From: Octopus sinensis
Lineage: Eukaryota
Assembly (NCBI RefSeq): GCF_006345805.1
Contig: NW_021834287.1
Location: 1 to 50,026 of the forward strand
Length of the DNA stretch: 50,026 bases
Reading direction: 5' to 3'
The notes under the pieces were generated by a model. The model had not been told where the DNA came from. It saw only the letters and a list, made by a program, of their open reading frames with translations, and did no database searches. Position 1 is the first letter of the stretch. Each line of letters starts with the position of its first letter. The position numbers were made by a program, and so were the translations under genes. Shown piece by piece: positions 16,057 to 24,476 of this stretch.

Positions 16057-16274
16057 TTATTTTTTCGATTGTTTCCGTAGCGATGGCGAAAACTTTGGTA
16101 TGACTTCTCTGTTGTTTCGCGGTTTGCTTTTCGGGTTTCCTCTGTACATCCCGTAGCACCAGTTTCCATGAGGATGAAACCCACCGGGGCAAGCGCAGTA
16201 GTAGGATCCATATGTGTTAACACACCTGTAAGGATGAGGACAGTAATGGATTCCGCACTCGCATTCATTAACGT
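16057..16274 (-). CDS. Exon 4 of secreted EMI-like/cbEGF gene: calcium-binding EGF domain plus basic tail
   Basis: Acceptor ttttattttcag|AC (phase 1). D-VNECECGIHYCPHPYRCVNTYGSYYCACPGGFHPHGNWCY fits the cbEGF consensus D-V-N-E-C...C-x-N-x-x-G-S-Y-x-C-x-C-x-x-G-F. Confidence 0.85.
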
Positions 16275-16386
16275 CTGAAAATAAAAATAGGTAAAAATAC
16301 ATGAGTAAAAATATTTAAAAAATTAGAAATATTAAAAGAAAAAACCCATAGCCCTTTCCGTAAAGGGTTCAAATAAAAGCCTAGGG

Positions 16387-16587
16387 CAGTGGTTTTCAAC
16401 CAGGGTTCCACCAGTACAGTTCAGGGGTTCCGCAAGAAGTTACAAAAATGCTAAAATCGACAGTAATTTTTAATTCTCCTGTGCAGATATGTGTGCATAA
16501 GACTATTAAATTATTGCACAGGGGTTCCTCGAGCCAGTGGAATGTTTCCTTGGGGTTCCGCTCTAGTAAAAAGGTTGAAAAGCACTG
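16387..16587. mobile_element. hAT (Charlie-like) MITE, 201 bp, in intron 3
   Basis: 15-bp TIRs CAGTGGTTTTCAACC / GGTTGAAAAGCACTG (14 of 15 match); perfect 8-bp TSD GCCTAGGG at 16379-16386 and 16588-16595. Confidence 0.9.
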
Positions 16588-17579
16588 GCCTAGGGAGTAT
16601 CTGAGGTGAAAGCTGTTGGTTGGCATCAGGTCAGTTTTTGCACAACCGGCCAAAGTTTTCTATCATGAACTCCTGATGAAACACATATTCATGAATACAC
16701 CACTACCATAAACAAAGAAATATATATATATATATATATATATATACCATCATCGTCATCATCATCATTATCGTCATCGTCATCATCACCACTACCATTC
16801 TCAATATCATTTAACGACCGTCACTGAACAATTGACCGATTTGTTGAGATAACTGGTGCATCTTGGAGCTGCTTCCAATGAGTTTTCAGCGACGAATATC
16901 GATGAAAAAAGTTGCCACCAAGATTTGTGCCTTCCTTGCTCAGGGAAGTTCAAAGCAGTCATGACTGAAAGGACAGTTGTAAATTGATCCGGACCTCTTT
17001 TTCAAAGGTCATCACTGGTGAAGAAAGCTGATGCTACGGAATGTGGAAGAGGTGAGAAAAACAAAAGCACGACTGCTAAGAATAGGGGAAAACAACTCCT
17101 TGACTCGTGTTTTGCTTCAAATGGAGAATACTTTGAAACTGCAAACATATAAAACTAAGTGAAGATAATATTTTGCACAATTCCGGCTTCTTTGGGTTCC
17201 CCTTGTATGAAAATATGCAAAACAATAGGGAGCAAAAACTGGAACCCTTAAGATGATGGCTTTTTTAAAAGTATAAATATATAGAGATTTACATTAAAAG
17301 GTCCAACTTATACAGAATACAAGCAACAGGGAAAATTAAAGGGGTGGGAGAAGGGCATTATAAGTCCAACAGCTGTTTCTAGGGGTTCAGAAATCCATAA
17401 TAATGTTGGCTGGATCACCGATTGCCCAGAAACGGTTGTTTGTCTCATGACACCTTTAACTTTCTCTGTCCTTTTCATTCTCCGGATGTTGCATCTGTTA
17501 ATAGAAATATCCAGAGATTTATGCATCAAACTTGGTAACCGGAAACTTTCCACCTTTTGCTTTCTCCTGTTTTGCATTT

Positions 17580-18170
17580 ATCATCATCATCATCATCATC
17601 GTTTAACGTCCGCTTTCCATGCTAGCATGGGTTGGACGATTTGACTGAGGTCTGGCGAACCAGATGGCAGCACCAGGCTCCAGTCTTGATCTGGCAGAGT
17701 TTCTACAGCTGGATGCCCTTCCTAACACCAACCACTCCGCGACTGTAGTGGGTGCTTTTTACATGCCACCGGCAAGGGGGCCAGTCAGGCGGCACTGGCA
17801 ACGACCTCACTTGAATCCTTTTACACATGCCACCAGCACAGGTGCCAGTAAGGCAACGCTGGTAACGATCACGCTCAAATGGTGCCCTTTTACATGTCAC
17901 TGGCACGGAAGCCAGTTAGCCACTCTGGCAATGATCACGCTTGGATTTTGCTCTTAGCACCCTACTAGCACAGGGCACAAGTGCCAGTAAGGCGACGCTG
18001 GTAACGATCACACTCGAATGGTGCCTTTTAAGTGCCACCGGAACGGACGCCGGTCAGTTGCTCTGGCAACGATCACACTCATATGGTGCTCTTAGCACTC
18101 CACTAGCACGGATGCCAGTCGTCGAATTTGATTTCGATTTCCCTTGACTCAACAGGTCTTCACAAGCAGA
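17580..18170 (-). mobile_element. SINE-like family D with (GAT)n tail and internal tandem subrepeats
   Basis: catcatcatcgtttaacgtccgctttccatgctagcatgggttggacg shared with 18940-18990 and 19395-19660; repeated gccacc.gcac...gccagt...ggtaacgatcac units. Confidence 0.7.
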
Positions 18171-18241
18171 GTTTAGTGTCCAAAGAAGGAAAATATACAT
18201 ATATGTATATTTCGTATTTGCTGTATTTACTATATTTAATG

Positions 18242-18540
18242 TGTGGAGGCACAATGGCCTAGTGTTAGGGCAGCGGACTCGCGGTCGTAGGATCGCGGTT
18301 TCGATTCCCAGACCGGGCGTTGTGAGTGTTTATTGAGCAAAAACACCTAAAAGCTCCACGACGCTCCGCAGGGGGGGGGGTGATCCCTGCTGTACTCTTT
18401 CACCACTCTTTCTTCTGTTGGCCTGCTCGCTTAGCCAGCGGGGTGGCATCATTCGAAGGTTAAAACAATGCGAACGCATTGTGACCAGCGATGTGTAACT
18501 ACATCTGATGGACTGGTCGGTCACGTGATGACGTGATGAC
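18242..18540 (+). mobile_element. tRNA-derived SINE family C
   Basis: ggaggcacaatggcctagtgttagggcagcggactcgcggtcgtaggatcgcggtttcgattccc (tRNA-like head); head shared with 26975-27350. Confidence 0.8.
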
Positions 18541-19092
18541 TATATTTAATGTATGTGATGTGTCTAATTTGTTTTGTCTGTATTATTTGCTTTGTACCCA
18601 CTCAACCCGATCCATCTGATTGCCTTCCTTCACTTTGTAGAAAGATGTTCTGCATAGACATTGTCGGTGTCCAAGTTTGAATCTTTTAAGAACGATTGTC
18701 TTCTATTCGGAGAACATCTGGATTTCATTTGTGGACTATATATCTGTGTGTATATGTATGTACTGATATATATATATGTATGTATGTATGTATGTATGTA
18801 TGTATATATGTATGTATAAATATCCATATAGACGTCTTCTATATCGTAGGGCTGACCAAAGCCCTGTGAGTAGAAGTGGCCGCCAATAGCAACTGAAAGA
18901 AGACCTCTATATATGTATGGCTATGGCTATGTATATATATAGTCCAACCCATGCTAGCATGGAAAGTGGACGTTAAACGATGATGATGATATATATATAT
19001 ATATATATATATATATATATATATACGGCTATTACTTATATATTGTTTATTCATTTTTGTACTTTTTCTGATTTGTGTTTTAAAATATACTT

Positions 19093-22282: not shown

Positions 22283-22721
22283 CTGCAAAGTGAAAGAATG
22301 AGAGTTAAAAGGAATTTATGAGAAGAGTGGCTACAGCTACAGAGCTGCATACATACATACCTATATATACATATATATATATATATATATATATATATTA
22401 TATTAAATTAGAGATAAAACCACTATTAGGCAAATCAAACAGTGAAAATCATTAGCCAATACATCGAAATAAAATTAATTAAAAAAATATAAAATATAAA
22501 TATAAAAAATATAAAATTCCAAATTAAAATATTTAAATTAAAGTTAAAATTTAAAATTATTTAAATTTAAACTTATAAAAAGGGGTTACAAAATGGTGGA
22601 AGGGGACAAAACTGCCATTCGTTTGGGTTTTACATTATTGTGAATACCTTTGTACCATTCTTGCAAACATTTACTCTGTTTTGTTAGTAGTAAGAACTAA
22701 AAGAAGTGGCTTCGTATTTAC

Positions 22722-22787
22722 CTGCACCTTCCACTTTTACAGGGTCTATAGGTTACTTTTTTGGAGCATCTGTAATAACACCATCCG
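22722..22787 (-). CDS. Exon 2 of secreted EMI-like/cbEGF gene
   Basis: Acceptor cccatttttctttacag|C, donor AG|gtaaat; 66 nt, phase 2-2; encodes (N)GWCYYRCSKKVTYRPCKSGRC(R). Confidence 0.8.
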
Positions 22788-22926
22788 CTGTAAAGAAAAA
22801 TGGGACATGAGATATATAAAAATTAGATAGATAGATTGATAGACAGACAGACAGATAGAGAGGGAGACAGATAGATAGATAGATGGACGGACGGATGATA
22901 TATATATATATATATAATATTAATTA

Positions 22927-23127
22927 GAGACAAAACCACTATTTTGCAAATCAAACAAGGAAAGACTTAATCAATACATAAAAAAATTTTAATATAAAGT
23001 AAATATTTATTTATTTATTTATTTATTTATTTATTTATTTATTTTATTTATTTACTTTATATTAAAATTTTTTTATGTATTGATTAAGTCTTTCCTTGTT
23101 TGATTTGCAAAATAGTGGTTTTGTCTC
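22927..23127. repeat. Perfect fold-back inverted repeat, 79-bp arms around a (TATT)n spacer, in intron 1
   Basis: 22927-23005 is the exact reverse complement of 23049-23127. A diverged single copy lies at about 22408-22470. Confidence 0.9.
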
Positions 23128-23972
23128 GAATTATATTATATAATATTTTACTTTAAAATTGGATTTAATCCTAAATCTGATTTTTCCCTGTAAATTTGGA
23201 TTTATTCCCTAATATTTATTATTATATATATATATATATATATGTACATATATATGTAGTTGTTGTTGTAGTAGTAGTAGTAGTAGTAATAATCATGAAG
23301 ATTGTTGATTGAATCGGGTACTTAAAATAAAGATATGCACCAGGTAGTGTTGAATAAACCTGTGGTCACCACCTATGGTCGATTAAATATACAACAGGAT
23401 ATTCCACTTGTGCACAAACAGAAAACCGTTGCTATGTAGGTTTAGCACCTAGGGGCTGGTTCAAATCGCACGTTGCGATGATCATAAGCTGTTAGTACAC
23501 ATCAGGGTTTCCGATGTATCATAAACCTCTATGGTGTATTATAATCAAATGAATGGTAACAGACAACGGATAACTGTCAGCTCTTTACAGCTGTTTCTAA
23601 TACACTTTTTTAAATAGAAGAATTAATGAATTAATCATTACAAAAACCGTAATCATCAAATGAAACATAATTTCAAAACAATCTTTCTTCTTGTATTTCA
23701 AAAATGGGTAAGAAACACCTGTAATTAGCTGACTTTTATCCATCACCTGTCATTATTCATTTCTTTGTGTGTATAAACACAAACAGACAGACAGAACTGG
23801 CGTGTCTTGAAGGAACTTTAAAATGGTCAGACCCTTCTGAGTGCAGGAGCCATCATGGCCACATCAGCACCAGAAACTTGGAACAGATGCTCGATAAGAG
23901 GCTAAGCACAATTCCAGGTACCTATGGAGTGGGGGAACAATGGTAATATGCGTTGGATGTAACAATACTTAC

Positions 23973-24217
23973 TTAGGCCACTGGAATGGTATGCGCTTTT
24001 CAGCAGAACTTCCATCTCCTTCCTCTTCTGTCCCACTAACTGACAGCCCTTCTATTATTTCCTTGGCTTCATATTCATCAACAGGCGTCAACTCTGTCGT
24101 TGTTGTAACATTATCTGATGCGACTGTTGTTTCTGTCGTTGTTGCAACATTATCTGATGCGACTGTTGTCACCCACAGACACAAAACGAAAGTCGTTAAG
24201 AGCACAAGATTCTTCAT
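23973..24217 (-). CDS. Exon 1 of secreted EMI-like/cbEGF gene: signal peptide, acidic propeptide, KR site
   Basis: Kozak-like acagccATG; MKNLVLLTTFVLCLWVTTVA hydrophobic leader; ...SSAEKR-IPFQWP; donor CCT AA|gtaagt (phase 2); 39-bp internal tandem duplication at about 24093-24169. Confidence 0.85.
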
Positions 24218-24432
24218 GGCTGTTGTTTCTTTCGTTTAGTTTTCAGTGCTCCCCCTGATTACTGACACACAAACGGCTTGGGAAAAATGCCTAAGTCTTC
24301 GTGTTGGATTTGTCTTCTGGTGGTTCCTCTAACACTCAAAAGTTTTCAACAATTGTAGCAGTAGTGGCAGCAGTAGCAGCAGTCTTGTTGCACCAACGGC
24401 CAGGTCATGTTACAACTGTCCACAAACAGTCT

Positions 24433-24476
24433 TATTTATAATAAAACAGCAACATTCTCCCCCGTAATTTGATTGG
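24433..24476 (-). promoter_or_regulatory. TATA box and CCAAT box of the EMI-EGF gene
   Basis: TATAAATA on - at 24433-24440 and AACCAATC containing CCAAT at 24472-24476, about 215 nt upstream of the ATG. Confidence 0.6.

Follow-up and report, generated by a model that had tools for sequence, protein, structure and literature searches.

A genus-restricted Octopus gene with fast-changing exons: LOC118761678 and its predicted secreted, cysteine-rich product

The subject of this account is a single gene of Octopus sinensis, LOC118761678, and the stretch of DNA in which it lies (the window), which is the entire 50,026-bp contig VCDQ01005998.1 of assembly GCA_006345805.1. The gene is already annotated, has five coding exons and specifies a precursor of 240 residues. 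Its coding exons, except for the parts encoding the signal peptide and the first EGF domain, have diverged from their O. vulgaris counterparts at roughly ten times the rate of introns 1-3 and of the block that holds the promoter and 5' untranslated region (UTR), a pattern like that of arms-race genes. The features of the gene are given below, and among them the CCAAT, TATAAATA, Kozak purine and AATAAA entries are consensus matches and not proof of use.

24472-24476, minus strand: CCAAT motif, a putative promoter element found by direct reading, in a block conserved with O. vulgaris
24433-24440, minus strand: TATAAATA motif, a putative TATA box found by direct reading, about 215 nucleotides upstream of the ATG, in the conserved upstream block
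at the ATG, minus strand: start context with a purine at -3, by direct reading
23973-24217, minus strand: coding exon 1, donor AA/gtaagt, phase 2
24217-24158, minus strand: in exon 1, signal peptide, residues 1-20
24157-23993, minus strand: in exon 1, acidic Thr/Glu-rich region, residues 21-75, isoelectric point (pI) 4.05
23992-23973, minus strand: in exon 1, start of the basic module, IPFQWP
24093-24169, minus strand: 39-bp tandem duplication in exon 1, two copies, 97% matches, encoding a repeated TTVASDNV(A/T)TTTE
22722-22787, minus strand: coding exon 2, 66 nucleotides, phase 2/2, first four Cys of the basic module (GWCYYRCSKKVTYRPCKSGRC)
22200-22282, minus strand: coding exon 3, 83 nucleotides, phase 2/1, RIAYKLVYRMCRRCCPGYRYDRRRRRCI, the half of the basic module that contains CCxGY
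20619-20729, minus strand: coding exon 4, 111 nucleotides, phase 1/1, calcium-binding EGF domain (cbEGF) 1 (DINEC...NHCH), borders ag/AT...CATG/gtaagt
16057-16274, minus strand: coding exon 5, cbEGF 2 (DVNECECG...NWCY) with a conserved seventh Cys, and the Lys/Arg-rich tail with a conserved VIPKF
16057-16059, minus strand: stop codon TAA, the end of exon 5
16056-16061, minus strand: AATAAA, overlapping the stop codon, consensus match only
15718: ATTAAA, the next poly(A)-signal candidate, consensus match only

A first-pass annotation of the window, made from the letters alone, had described a four-exon gene here, and the coordinates, AG/GT borders and phases of those exons were correct; its 203-residue open reading frame (ORF) was exactly reproduced when the four were joined (612 nucleotides), and the CCAAT, TATA, Kozak and poly(A) elements that it named are present as consensus matches. 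What it had missed was a fifth exon, at 20729-20619. A protein search brought up the RefSeq protein XP_036355705.1, of 240 residues and encoded on the same contig, whose first ATG and stop are identical to those of the four-exon model and whose sole difference from the 203-residue ORF is 37 additional residues, encoded by exon 4 from within what had been taken for a 5.9-kb intron 3. The shorter frame had looked complete because the missed exon is phase-symmetric (1/1) and skipping it keeps the frame; it could match only a hypothetical isoform from which exon 4 is skipped. Since the first ATG and stop are shared, the locus cannot be a mere 5' portion of some longer gene, a concern that the first-pass annotation had raised about its own model. 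For gene reading by eye, the lesson is that the set of exons is not established by an open frame alone, since a phase-symmetric exon can be skipped. The broader claim held up: the gene is real and spliced, and its small product carries secreted-type sequence features. The gene had not been missed by automated annotation as supposed, for RefSeq has it, although the O. vulgaris model and one O. bimaculoides model are wrong or truncated. No second copy of LOC118761678 was found in the 50-kb window, where it is single-copy.

Length differences were observed within the gene. The 39-bp duplication in exon 1, which makes up part of the acidic segment, spans residues around the presumed signal-peptidase site and is a recent in-frame insertion of 13 residues, specific to O. 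sinensis because O. vulgaris has no such copy (a 39-bp gap in the alignment). In intron 4 (about 17750-19690), the two species differ by indels of about 1.7 kb, which account for gene lengths of 8.2 kb in O. sinensis and 6.4 kb in O. vulgaris; a 138-bp tandem pair lies in the same intron, at 17836-18109.

The precursor has six parts: a signal sequence of the typical N-terminal kind (residues 1-20), an acidic segment, a basic module with eight Cys, cbEGF1, cbEGF2 and a basic tail. The acidic segment (residues 21-75), rich in Thr, Glu and Asp, has in O. sinensis a pI of 4.05, a net charge of -11 and one NVT sequon, and the basic module (residues 76-131), which ends in CC-x-G-Y/F, has a pI of 10.3 and a net charge of +16; this charge pairing is kept in O. 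bimaculoides, at -29 and +19. The tail of 31 residues is Lys/Arg-rich, with a pI of 11.6 and no Pfam match. The residue counts made from the four-exon model were accurate (14 Asp/Glu in residues 21-75; 17 Lys/Arg and one Asp in exons 2-3), as was its general picture of an acidic N-terminal piece joined to a very basic Cys-rich module and cbEGF. Its odd total of 15 mature Cys was right for four exons and becomes 21, still odd, with exon 4, in a mature part of about 165 residues and 20 kDa. Where one cbEGF had been counted there are two, EGF_CA (Pfam PF07645) scoring 47.8 bits against a cutoff of 27 in two stretches of the 240-residue protein, and 58 bits in the O. bimaculoides protein. The cbEGF calcium site D/N-x-D/N-E/Q-C, the six-Cys framework and the C-x-N-x4-[FY]-x-C hydroxylation-type motif can be read directly from the sequence (DINEC, DVNEC...CVNTYGSYYC), and cbEGF2 carries one additional, conserved Cys.

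The basic module had been assigned to the EMI family, of which a CC-P-G-[WYF]...C motif before an EGF domain is the hallmark. A motif of this type is found in the octopus proteins (CCPGY in O. sinensis, CCKGY in O. vulgaris and CCRGF in O. bimaculoides), with a Cys 11 residues on and then DINEC. EMI membership of the module was not demonstrated by profile searches: scanned alone, the O. sinensis module gave EMI (Pfam PF07546) as its sole Pfam signal, at 12.8 bits (E = 0.22; cutoff 25) and limited to profile positions 31-68 of 69, while Pfam reported no EMI match in the full-length O. sinensis protein and the longer O. bimaculoides module gave none at E <= 10. Run against PDB sequences, a profile of the module matched no chain as EMI and gave a single weak hit (E = 0.39), in an EGF domain of protein S, of which it covered the C-terminal half (CPEGYRYNLKSKSCEDIDEC); an EMILIN-1 EMI sequence had no matching PDB chain either. 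A search of 5.8 billion proteins with the profile was uninformative, since it returned nothing and missed even the known members of the family. The Cys spacing of the module, C-x8-C-x4-C-x10-C-x2-C-x12-C plus two extra Cys, would fit a degenerate EGF, an unproven alternative; none of the EGF-type Pfam models reports the module.

When residues 1-136 were searched with HMMER against 1.84 billion representative proteins (E <= 0.001), the matches comprised three Octopus proteins and one spurious bacterial repeat protein, which matched the Thr-rich segment. The same search found no animal EGFL7-type homology across the EMI-EGF-cbEGF region. By this measure of similarity the family is restricted to the genus Octopus, with no detectable relatives outside it, which bears out the early suggestion that the gene is lineage-specific. 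No paralogs were found among the annotated proteins of O. sinensis or O. vulgaris.

The O. vulgaris ortholog (OX597841.1) is syntenic, the whole region being collinear with the window and the flanks 97.5% identical. Its model, CAI9742928.1, is mis-built: it omits exon 2 and enters exon 4 via an internal AG, which puts the two EGF exons in the wrong frame. For our comparisons the O. vulgaris exons were translated one by one, with a break in exon 2 marked and left unrepaired. The full-length gene of O. bimaculoides, XP_014776253.1 (303 residues, named 'fibrillin-2'), is collinear with the window, introns included, and a truncated, partial duplicate, XP_014774685.2 (159 residues), which comprises exons 3-5 and whose model starts in intron sequence, lies inverted and head to head with it about 3 kb away. 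In the CM046628.1 extract, the duplicate occupies 10001-11984 on the plus strand and the full copy 1200-6982 on the minus strand. The two are 97% identical in patches around exons 3 and 4, unalignable in the intervening introns and 100% identical over 147 bp of the 3' flank of exon 5, a pattern that suggests patchy gene conversion. All 21 mature Cys are kept in the three Octopus species. The dibasic KR that had been proposed as a prohormone-convertase site is not conserved, the border between acidic and basic parts reading EKR-IPFQWP in O. sinensis, AAKH-IPFQWP in O. vulgaris and TVFK-PFQWP in O. bimaculoides. The database name 'fibulin-like 2' is wrong and misleading and came from best-hit transfer; a fibulin/EFEMP2 identity was considered and rejected, the protein having two cbEGF only and no fibulin-type C-terminal module. 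Besides this name, the databases need correcting for the out-of-frame O. vulgaris model and for the O. bimaculoides model that represents a truncated duplicate.

The O. sinensis and O. vulgaris loci were aligned over 11.8 kb, with the following identities between the two species.

Intron 1: 99.2%
Intron 2: 100% (439/439)
Intron 3: 98.6%
Exon 1: 88.3%
Exon 2: 91.9%
Exon 3: 84.3% (13/83 nucleotides differ)
Exon 4: 98.2% (2/111 nucleotides differ), the slowest exon
Exon 5: 89.0%

Introns 1-3 together are 99.0% identical, with 30 mismatches in 3064 positions, against 68 in 680 positions for all exons (Fisher's test, p = 1.6e-29 with introns 1-3 and p = 4e-17 with all introns), an excess of 4- to 11-fold, and of about tenfold over introns 1-3. 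The upstream block that holds the promoter and 5' UTR (24218-24755) has six mismatches in about 540 aligned positions, five of them in 24606-24755. In a sliding window the divergence peaks on exons 1, 3 and 5, and the remaining peaks fall at microsatellite or indel borders; one spike, of apparent divergence or misalignment, falls on the (TA)n tract at 24744-25019, which adjoins the conserved promoter block on its upstream side. Against O. bimaculoides, identity is 76.5% in the exons and 87.2% in those stretches of intron that can be aligned (p = 7e-10).

Between O. sinensis and O. vulgaris, the Nei-Gojobori method gave a nonsynonymous divergence (dN) of 0.120 and a synonymous divergence (dS) of 0.058, a ratio of 2.06. 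Among the segments the ratio ranged from 0 in the signal peptide and 0.21 in EGF1, through 1.4 in the basic module, to 3.6 in EGF2, 3.8 in the acidic segment and 7.7 in the tail. The dN of 0.12 stands against an intron divergence of 0.010-0.027 (p = 3.5e-17). The signal peptide is identical at 20 of 20 residues, and not one of the 21 Cys is among the 28 mature sites that differ from O. vulgaris (P = 0.014) or the 64 that differ from O. bimaculoides (P = 1.3e-5), the cbEGF consensus likewise being unchanged between species. With O. bimaculoides as the outgroup, derived changes could be assigned to both lineages, ten to O. sinensis and six to O. vulgaris; on the longer branch to O. bimaculoides itself, dN/dS was 0.66. 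To judge from these comparisons, the exon changes are mostly amino-acid-changing and partly block-like, with replacement estimated at far above the local neutral rate. A replacement level above intron divergence, in a gene whose signal peptide and Cys framework are kept, is the pattern of secreted effectors under accelerated evolution (of the toxin, antimicrobial or reproductive type), and LOC118761678 shows it.

The kind of change also differs between exons and introns, transitions and transversions standing at 24:44 in the transversion-rich exons and 95:57 in the introns, and the exon changes include runs of 4-7 adjacent mismatches. Such runs are reminiscent of the segment switching of snake toxins (PMC2711939). 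Gene conversion confined to exons, a plausible process in view of the O. bimaculoides duplicate, would be compatible with them as well. Two further sources of divergence were considered and set aside: decay of an O. vulgaris pseudogene, which would proceed at no more than the intron rate, when the changes lie on both lineages and spare all Cys; and 'hard-wired RNA editing' of the A-to-G type, the exon changes being transversion-rich. A local tandem paralog was looked for in the window, and none was found.

That the protein is present in skin mucus has been reported for O. vulgaris, where A0A7E6EL58/LOC118761678 was identified, alongside mucins and collagens, in a tandem mass tag (TMT) proteome, its abundance being 3- to 5-fold higher in animals from the wild or maintained in aquaria than in senescent animals (PMC11431876). 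When the literature was searched by accession number, no article was found whose text names LOC118761678, the accession occurring in the supplementary tables of that study.

The reading that best accounts for these observations, to which we would give a probability of about 0.5, is that LOC118761678 encodes a secreted protein of the mucus, restricted to Octopus, whose disulfide scaffold is conserved while its surfaces change fast, and which probably acts as a mucosal defence or binding factor, a function that we infer. On secretion into the mucus it would form a scaffold locked by disulfides. Polyanionic partners, be they sulfated mucin glycans or the surfaces of microbes or parasites, could be bound by its cationic head and tail, the charge of which the acidic segment may shield in cis; the cbEGF pair would serve as a calcium-stiffened spacer, and the conserved odd Cys would permit disulfide-linked dimers or attachment to mucin. 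Because the scaffold is conserved while the surfaces are hypervariable, it is suggested that the partner is non-self, and hence that the role is one of mucosal defence or recognition. A bolder form of this proposal, which we put forward tentatively as possible rather than probable, is that the gene diversifies in the style of venom toxins (ASSET-like), partly in blocks and upon a frozen 21-Cys scaffold, in the service of Octopus-restricted mucosal recognition or defence.

Several points tell against this reading. The excess of dN over dS is by itself not significant (Fisher p = 0.079), and dS is also above the divergence of introns 1-3 (p = 1.7e-4), because of which a mutational or conversion process could contribute. 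The mucus evidence is at the level of protein groups, and the peptides listed for A0A7E6EL58, at least two, come from an in-silico digest (PMC11431876). Cleavage of the signal peptide was assigned by eye, without a predictor, and AlphaFold2, run on the mature part with a two-sequence alignment, returned an unusable model (pLDDT 42.9, pTM 0.26). In O. vulgaris, exon 2 (about 11366-11427 of the OX597841.1 extract) has a 4-bp deletion, a frameshift if the exon is included, and at the stop region (about 16460-16485 of that extract) TAA has become GAA, which extends the frame by five codons; this copy may be damaged or differently spliced, or the assembly may be in error. Skipping of exon 2 alone would stay in frame there (..QWP-R-IAYK..).

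Much of the same evidence could be read without any non-self target. A structural component of mucus or extracellular matrix, such as an EGFL7- or fibulin-like organiser of polymers, might evolve quickly through weak constraint on its charged, low-complexity segments, and it is true that cbEGF pairs are typical of matrix proteins, that the protein was found alongside mucins and collagens, that the acidic region and tail are compositionally simple and that dN/dS over the longer term, 0.66 against O. bimaculoides, is below 1. Relaxed constraint, however, cannot exceed the neutral intron level, which the exons surpass 4- to 11-fold, and the folded EGF2 is also substituted (dN/dS 3.6) with all Cys spared; as the protein has neither a fibulin C-terminal module nor an ortholog outside Octopus, we regard this explanation as unlikely. 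It could be argued instead that the divergence of the exons is mainly mutational, through non-allelic conversion from unannotated paralogs or ASSET-type block replacement of the sort described for snake toxins (PMC2711939), in which case the function could be anything. The joint rise of dS and dN, the transversion-rich changes and the runs of 4-7 adjacent mismatches all point that way, and the O. bimaculoides duplicate, with its 97% identical patches at exons 3 and 4 and unalignable introns, makes exon-limited conversion plausible. There is, however, no second copy in the 50-kb window and no paralog among the annotated proteins of O. sinensis or O. vulgaris, the changes are polarised to both lineages, and the sparing of all Cys and of the cbEGF consensus implies that selection filters the outcome whatever the mutational source, such that a mainly mutational account seems distinctly improbable to us.

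The proposal of the first-pass annotation was that of a four-exon prepropeptide, cut at KR by a convertase to free a minimal cationic antimicrobial or toxin of EMI plus one cbEGF, with the acidic pro-piece as no more than a neutralising chaperone. Some evidence favours it: the KR-IPFQWP site is present in O. sinensis, the charge pairing is kept in character in O. bimaculoides (-29 versus +19), the 203-residue ORF is open because exon 4 is of phase 1/1, and fast evolution behind a conserved signal peptide resembles that of toxin or antimicrobial peptide precursors. The annotated product, however, contains exon 4 and with it two cbEGF, the dibasic site is not conserved (KH in O. vulgaris, FK in O. 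bimaculoides), EMI lies below the Pfam threshold, and a mature part with two cbEGF, some 165 residues and 20 kDa, exceeds the usual size of a classical antimicrobial peptide, so that we think this proposal very doubtful. Its general idea, a lineage-specific cationic secreted effector, remains viable, an effector-type role fitting the fast evolution and the reported presence in skin mucus, while the KR-processed four-exon EMI-EGF mechanism attached to it is mostly unsupported. An equally slim chance may be given to a role in some other fast-evolving arena, be it reproduction (gamete or seminal), conspecific mucus signalling, or saliva and venom. Exons faster than introns and a conserved signal peptide are also found in reproductive and venom proteins, and conserved introns have been described in conotoxins (PMC3862624), but the sole expression evidence for LOC118761678 is from adult skin mucus and the searches run gave no similarity to described cephalopod salivary or reproductive proteins.

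Cephalopods depend on their skin mucus as a barrier; to our knowledge, they are without adaptive immunity, and we know of few cephalopod mucus effectors that have been characterised. A mucosal defence role for LOC118761678, if true, would mean that a mode of diversification familiar from venom toxins operates outside venom, in a cephalopod gene of the innate-immune barrier. The orphan basic module and the toxin-like evolutionary mode of LOC118761678 appear to be undescribed. As a single-copy candidate that is restricted to its genus and clearly marked by recurrent replacement on a fixed disulfide scaffold, the gene offers a tractable entry into the co-evolution of octopus hosts with microbes or parasites.

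The remainder of the window holds other features. Two adjacent intron-less ORFs on the plus strand, in different frames, span 4004-8299 (1431 residues) and 8320-9465 (381 residues); neither has a Pfam domain, and the O. vulgaris region syntenic to both (97.5% identical) is annotated as one product of 1853 residues. They represent an uncharacterised large single-exon gene (4004-9465), possibly frame-shifted in the contig. A non-LTR retrotransposon on the plus strand at 27768-30533, 3.5 kb upstream of LOC118761678, has an endonuclease/exonuclease/phosphatase domain and a reverse transcriptase, its ORF being interrupted at about 29420-29442, and a second retrotransposon fragment, with a zf-RVT domain, lies further upstream at 35100-36215 (plus strand). 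There is also a 2.4-kb (TGTA)n array at 43192-45547, and long (TA)n microsatellites occur at 20270-20556, 19667-19814 and 11151-11812 as well as at 24744-25019.

Among the known systems closest to it are EGFL7 and EGFL8, vertebrate secreted proteins of EMI-EGF-cbEGF architecture. They share with the octopus protein a small size (240-300 residues), secretion and an N-terminal Cys-rich module that ends in CCPG(Y/W)...C directly before two EGF-type domains. The octopus protein differs in several ways: it matches EMI below the threshold and over no more than the C-terminal half of the profile, both of its EGFs bind calcium by their consensus, its N-terminal segment is acidic, a basic tail stands in place of the C-terminal region of EGFL7, and no sequence relationship is detectable outside Octopus. 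Fibulin-4/EFEMP2, from which the automated name derives, is likewise extracellular and built with cbEGF domains, but the octopus protein has two cbEGF and a 31-residue basic tail rather than an array of five or six cbEGF and a fibulin-type C-terminal module. The NimB-type Nimrod proteins of insects, secreted factors of immunity and clearance, have a signal peptide, CCxGY and EGF-type repeats (PMC4073527, PMC8419693), an order of parts that is also that of the octopus protein. The octopus repeats, by direct reading, are classical cbEGF and lack the NIM consensus CxPxCxxxCxNGxCxxPxxCxCxxGY (PMC4073527); the motif is CCRGF in O. bimaculoides, and no homology was detected. In its mode of change, LOC118761678 invites comparison with the conotoxins and with the snake venom toxins, in which exon segments are replaced in the process called ASSET (PMC2711939). 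The octopus protein is not known as a product of a venom gland, is much larger, is made of generic cbEGF, is single-copy in O. sinensis rather than one of a large gene family and has no conserved processing site. What it has in common with those toxins is an invariant signal peptide, conserved introns, a hypervariable mature region on a fixed Cys framework (PMC3862624, PMC2711939) and the block-wise replacement of short exon segments.

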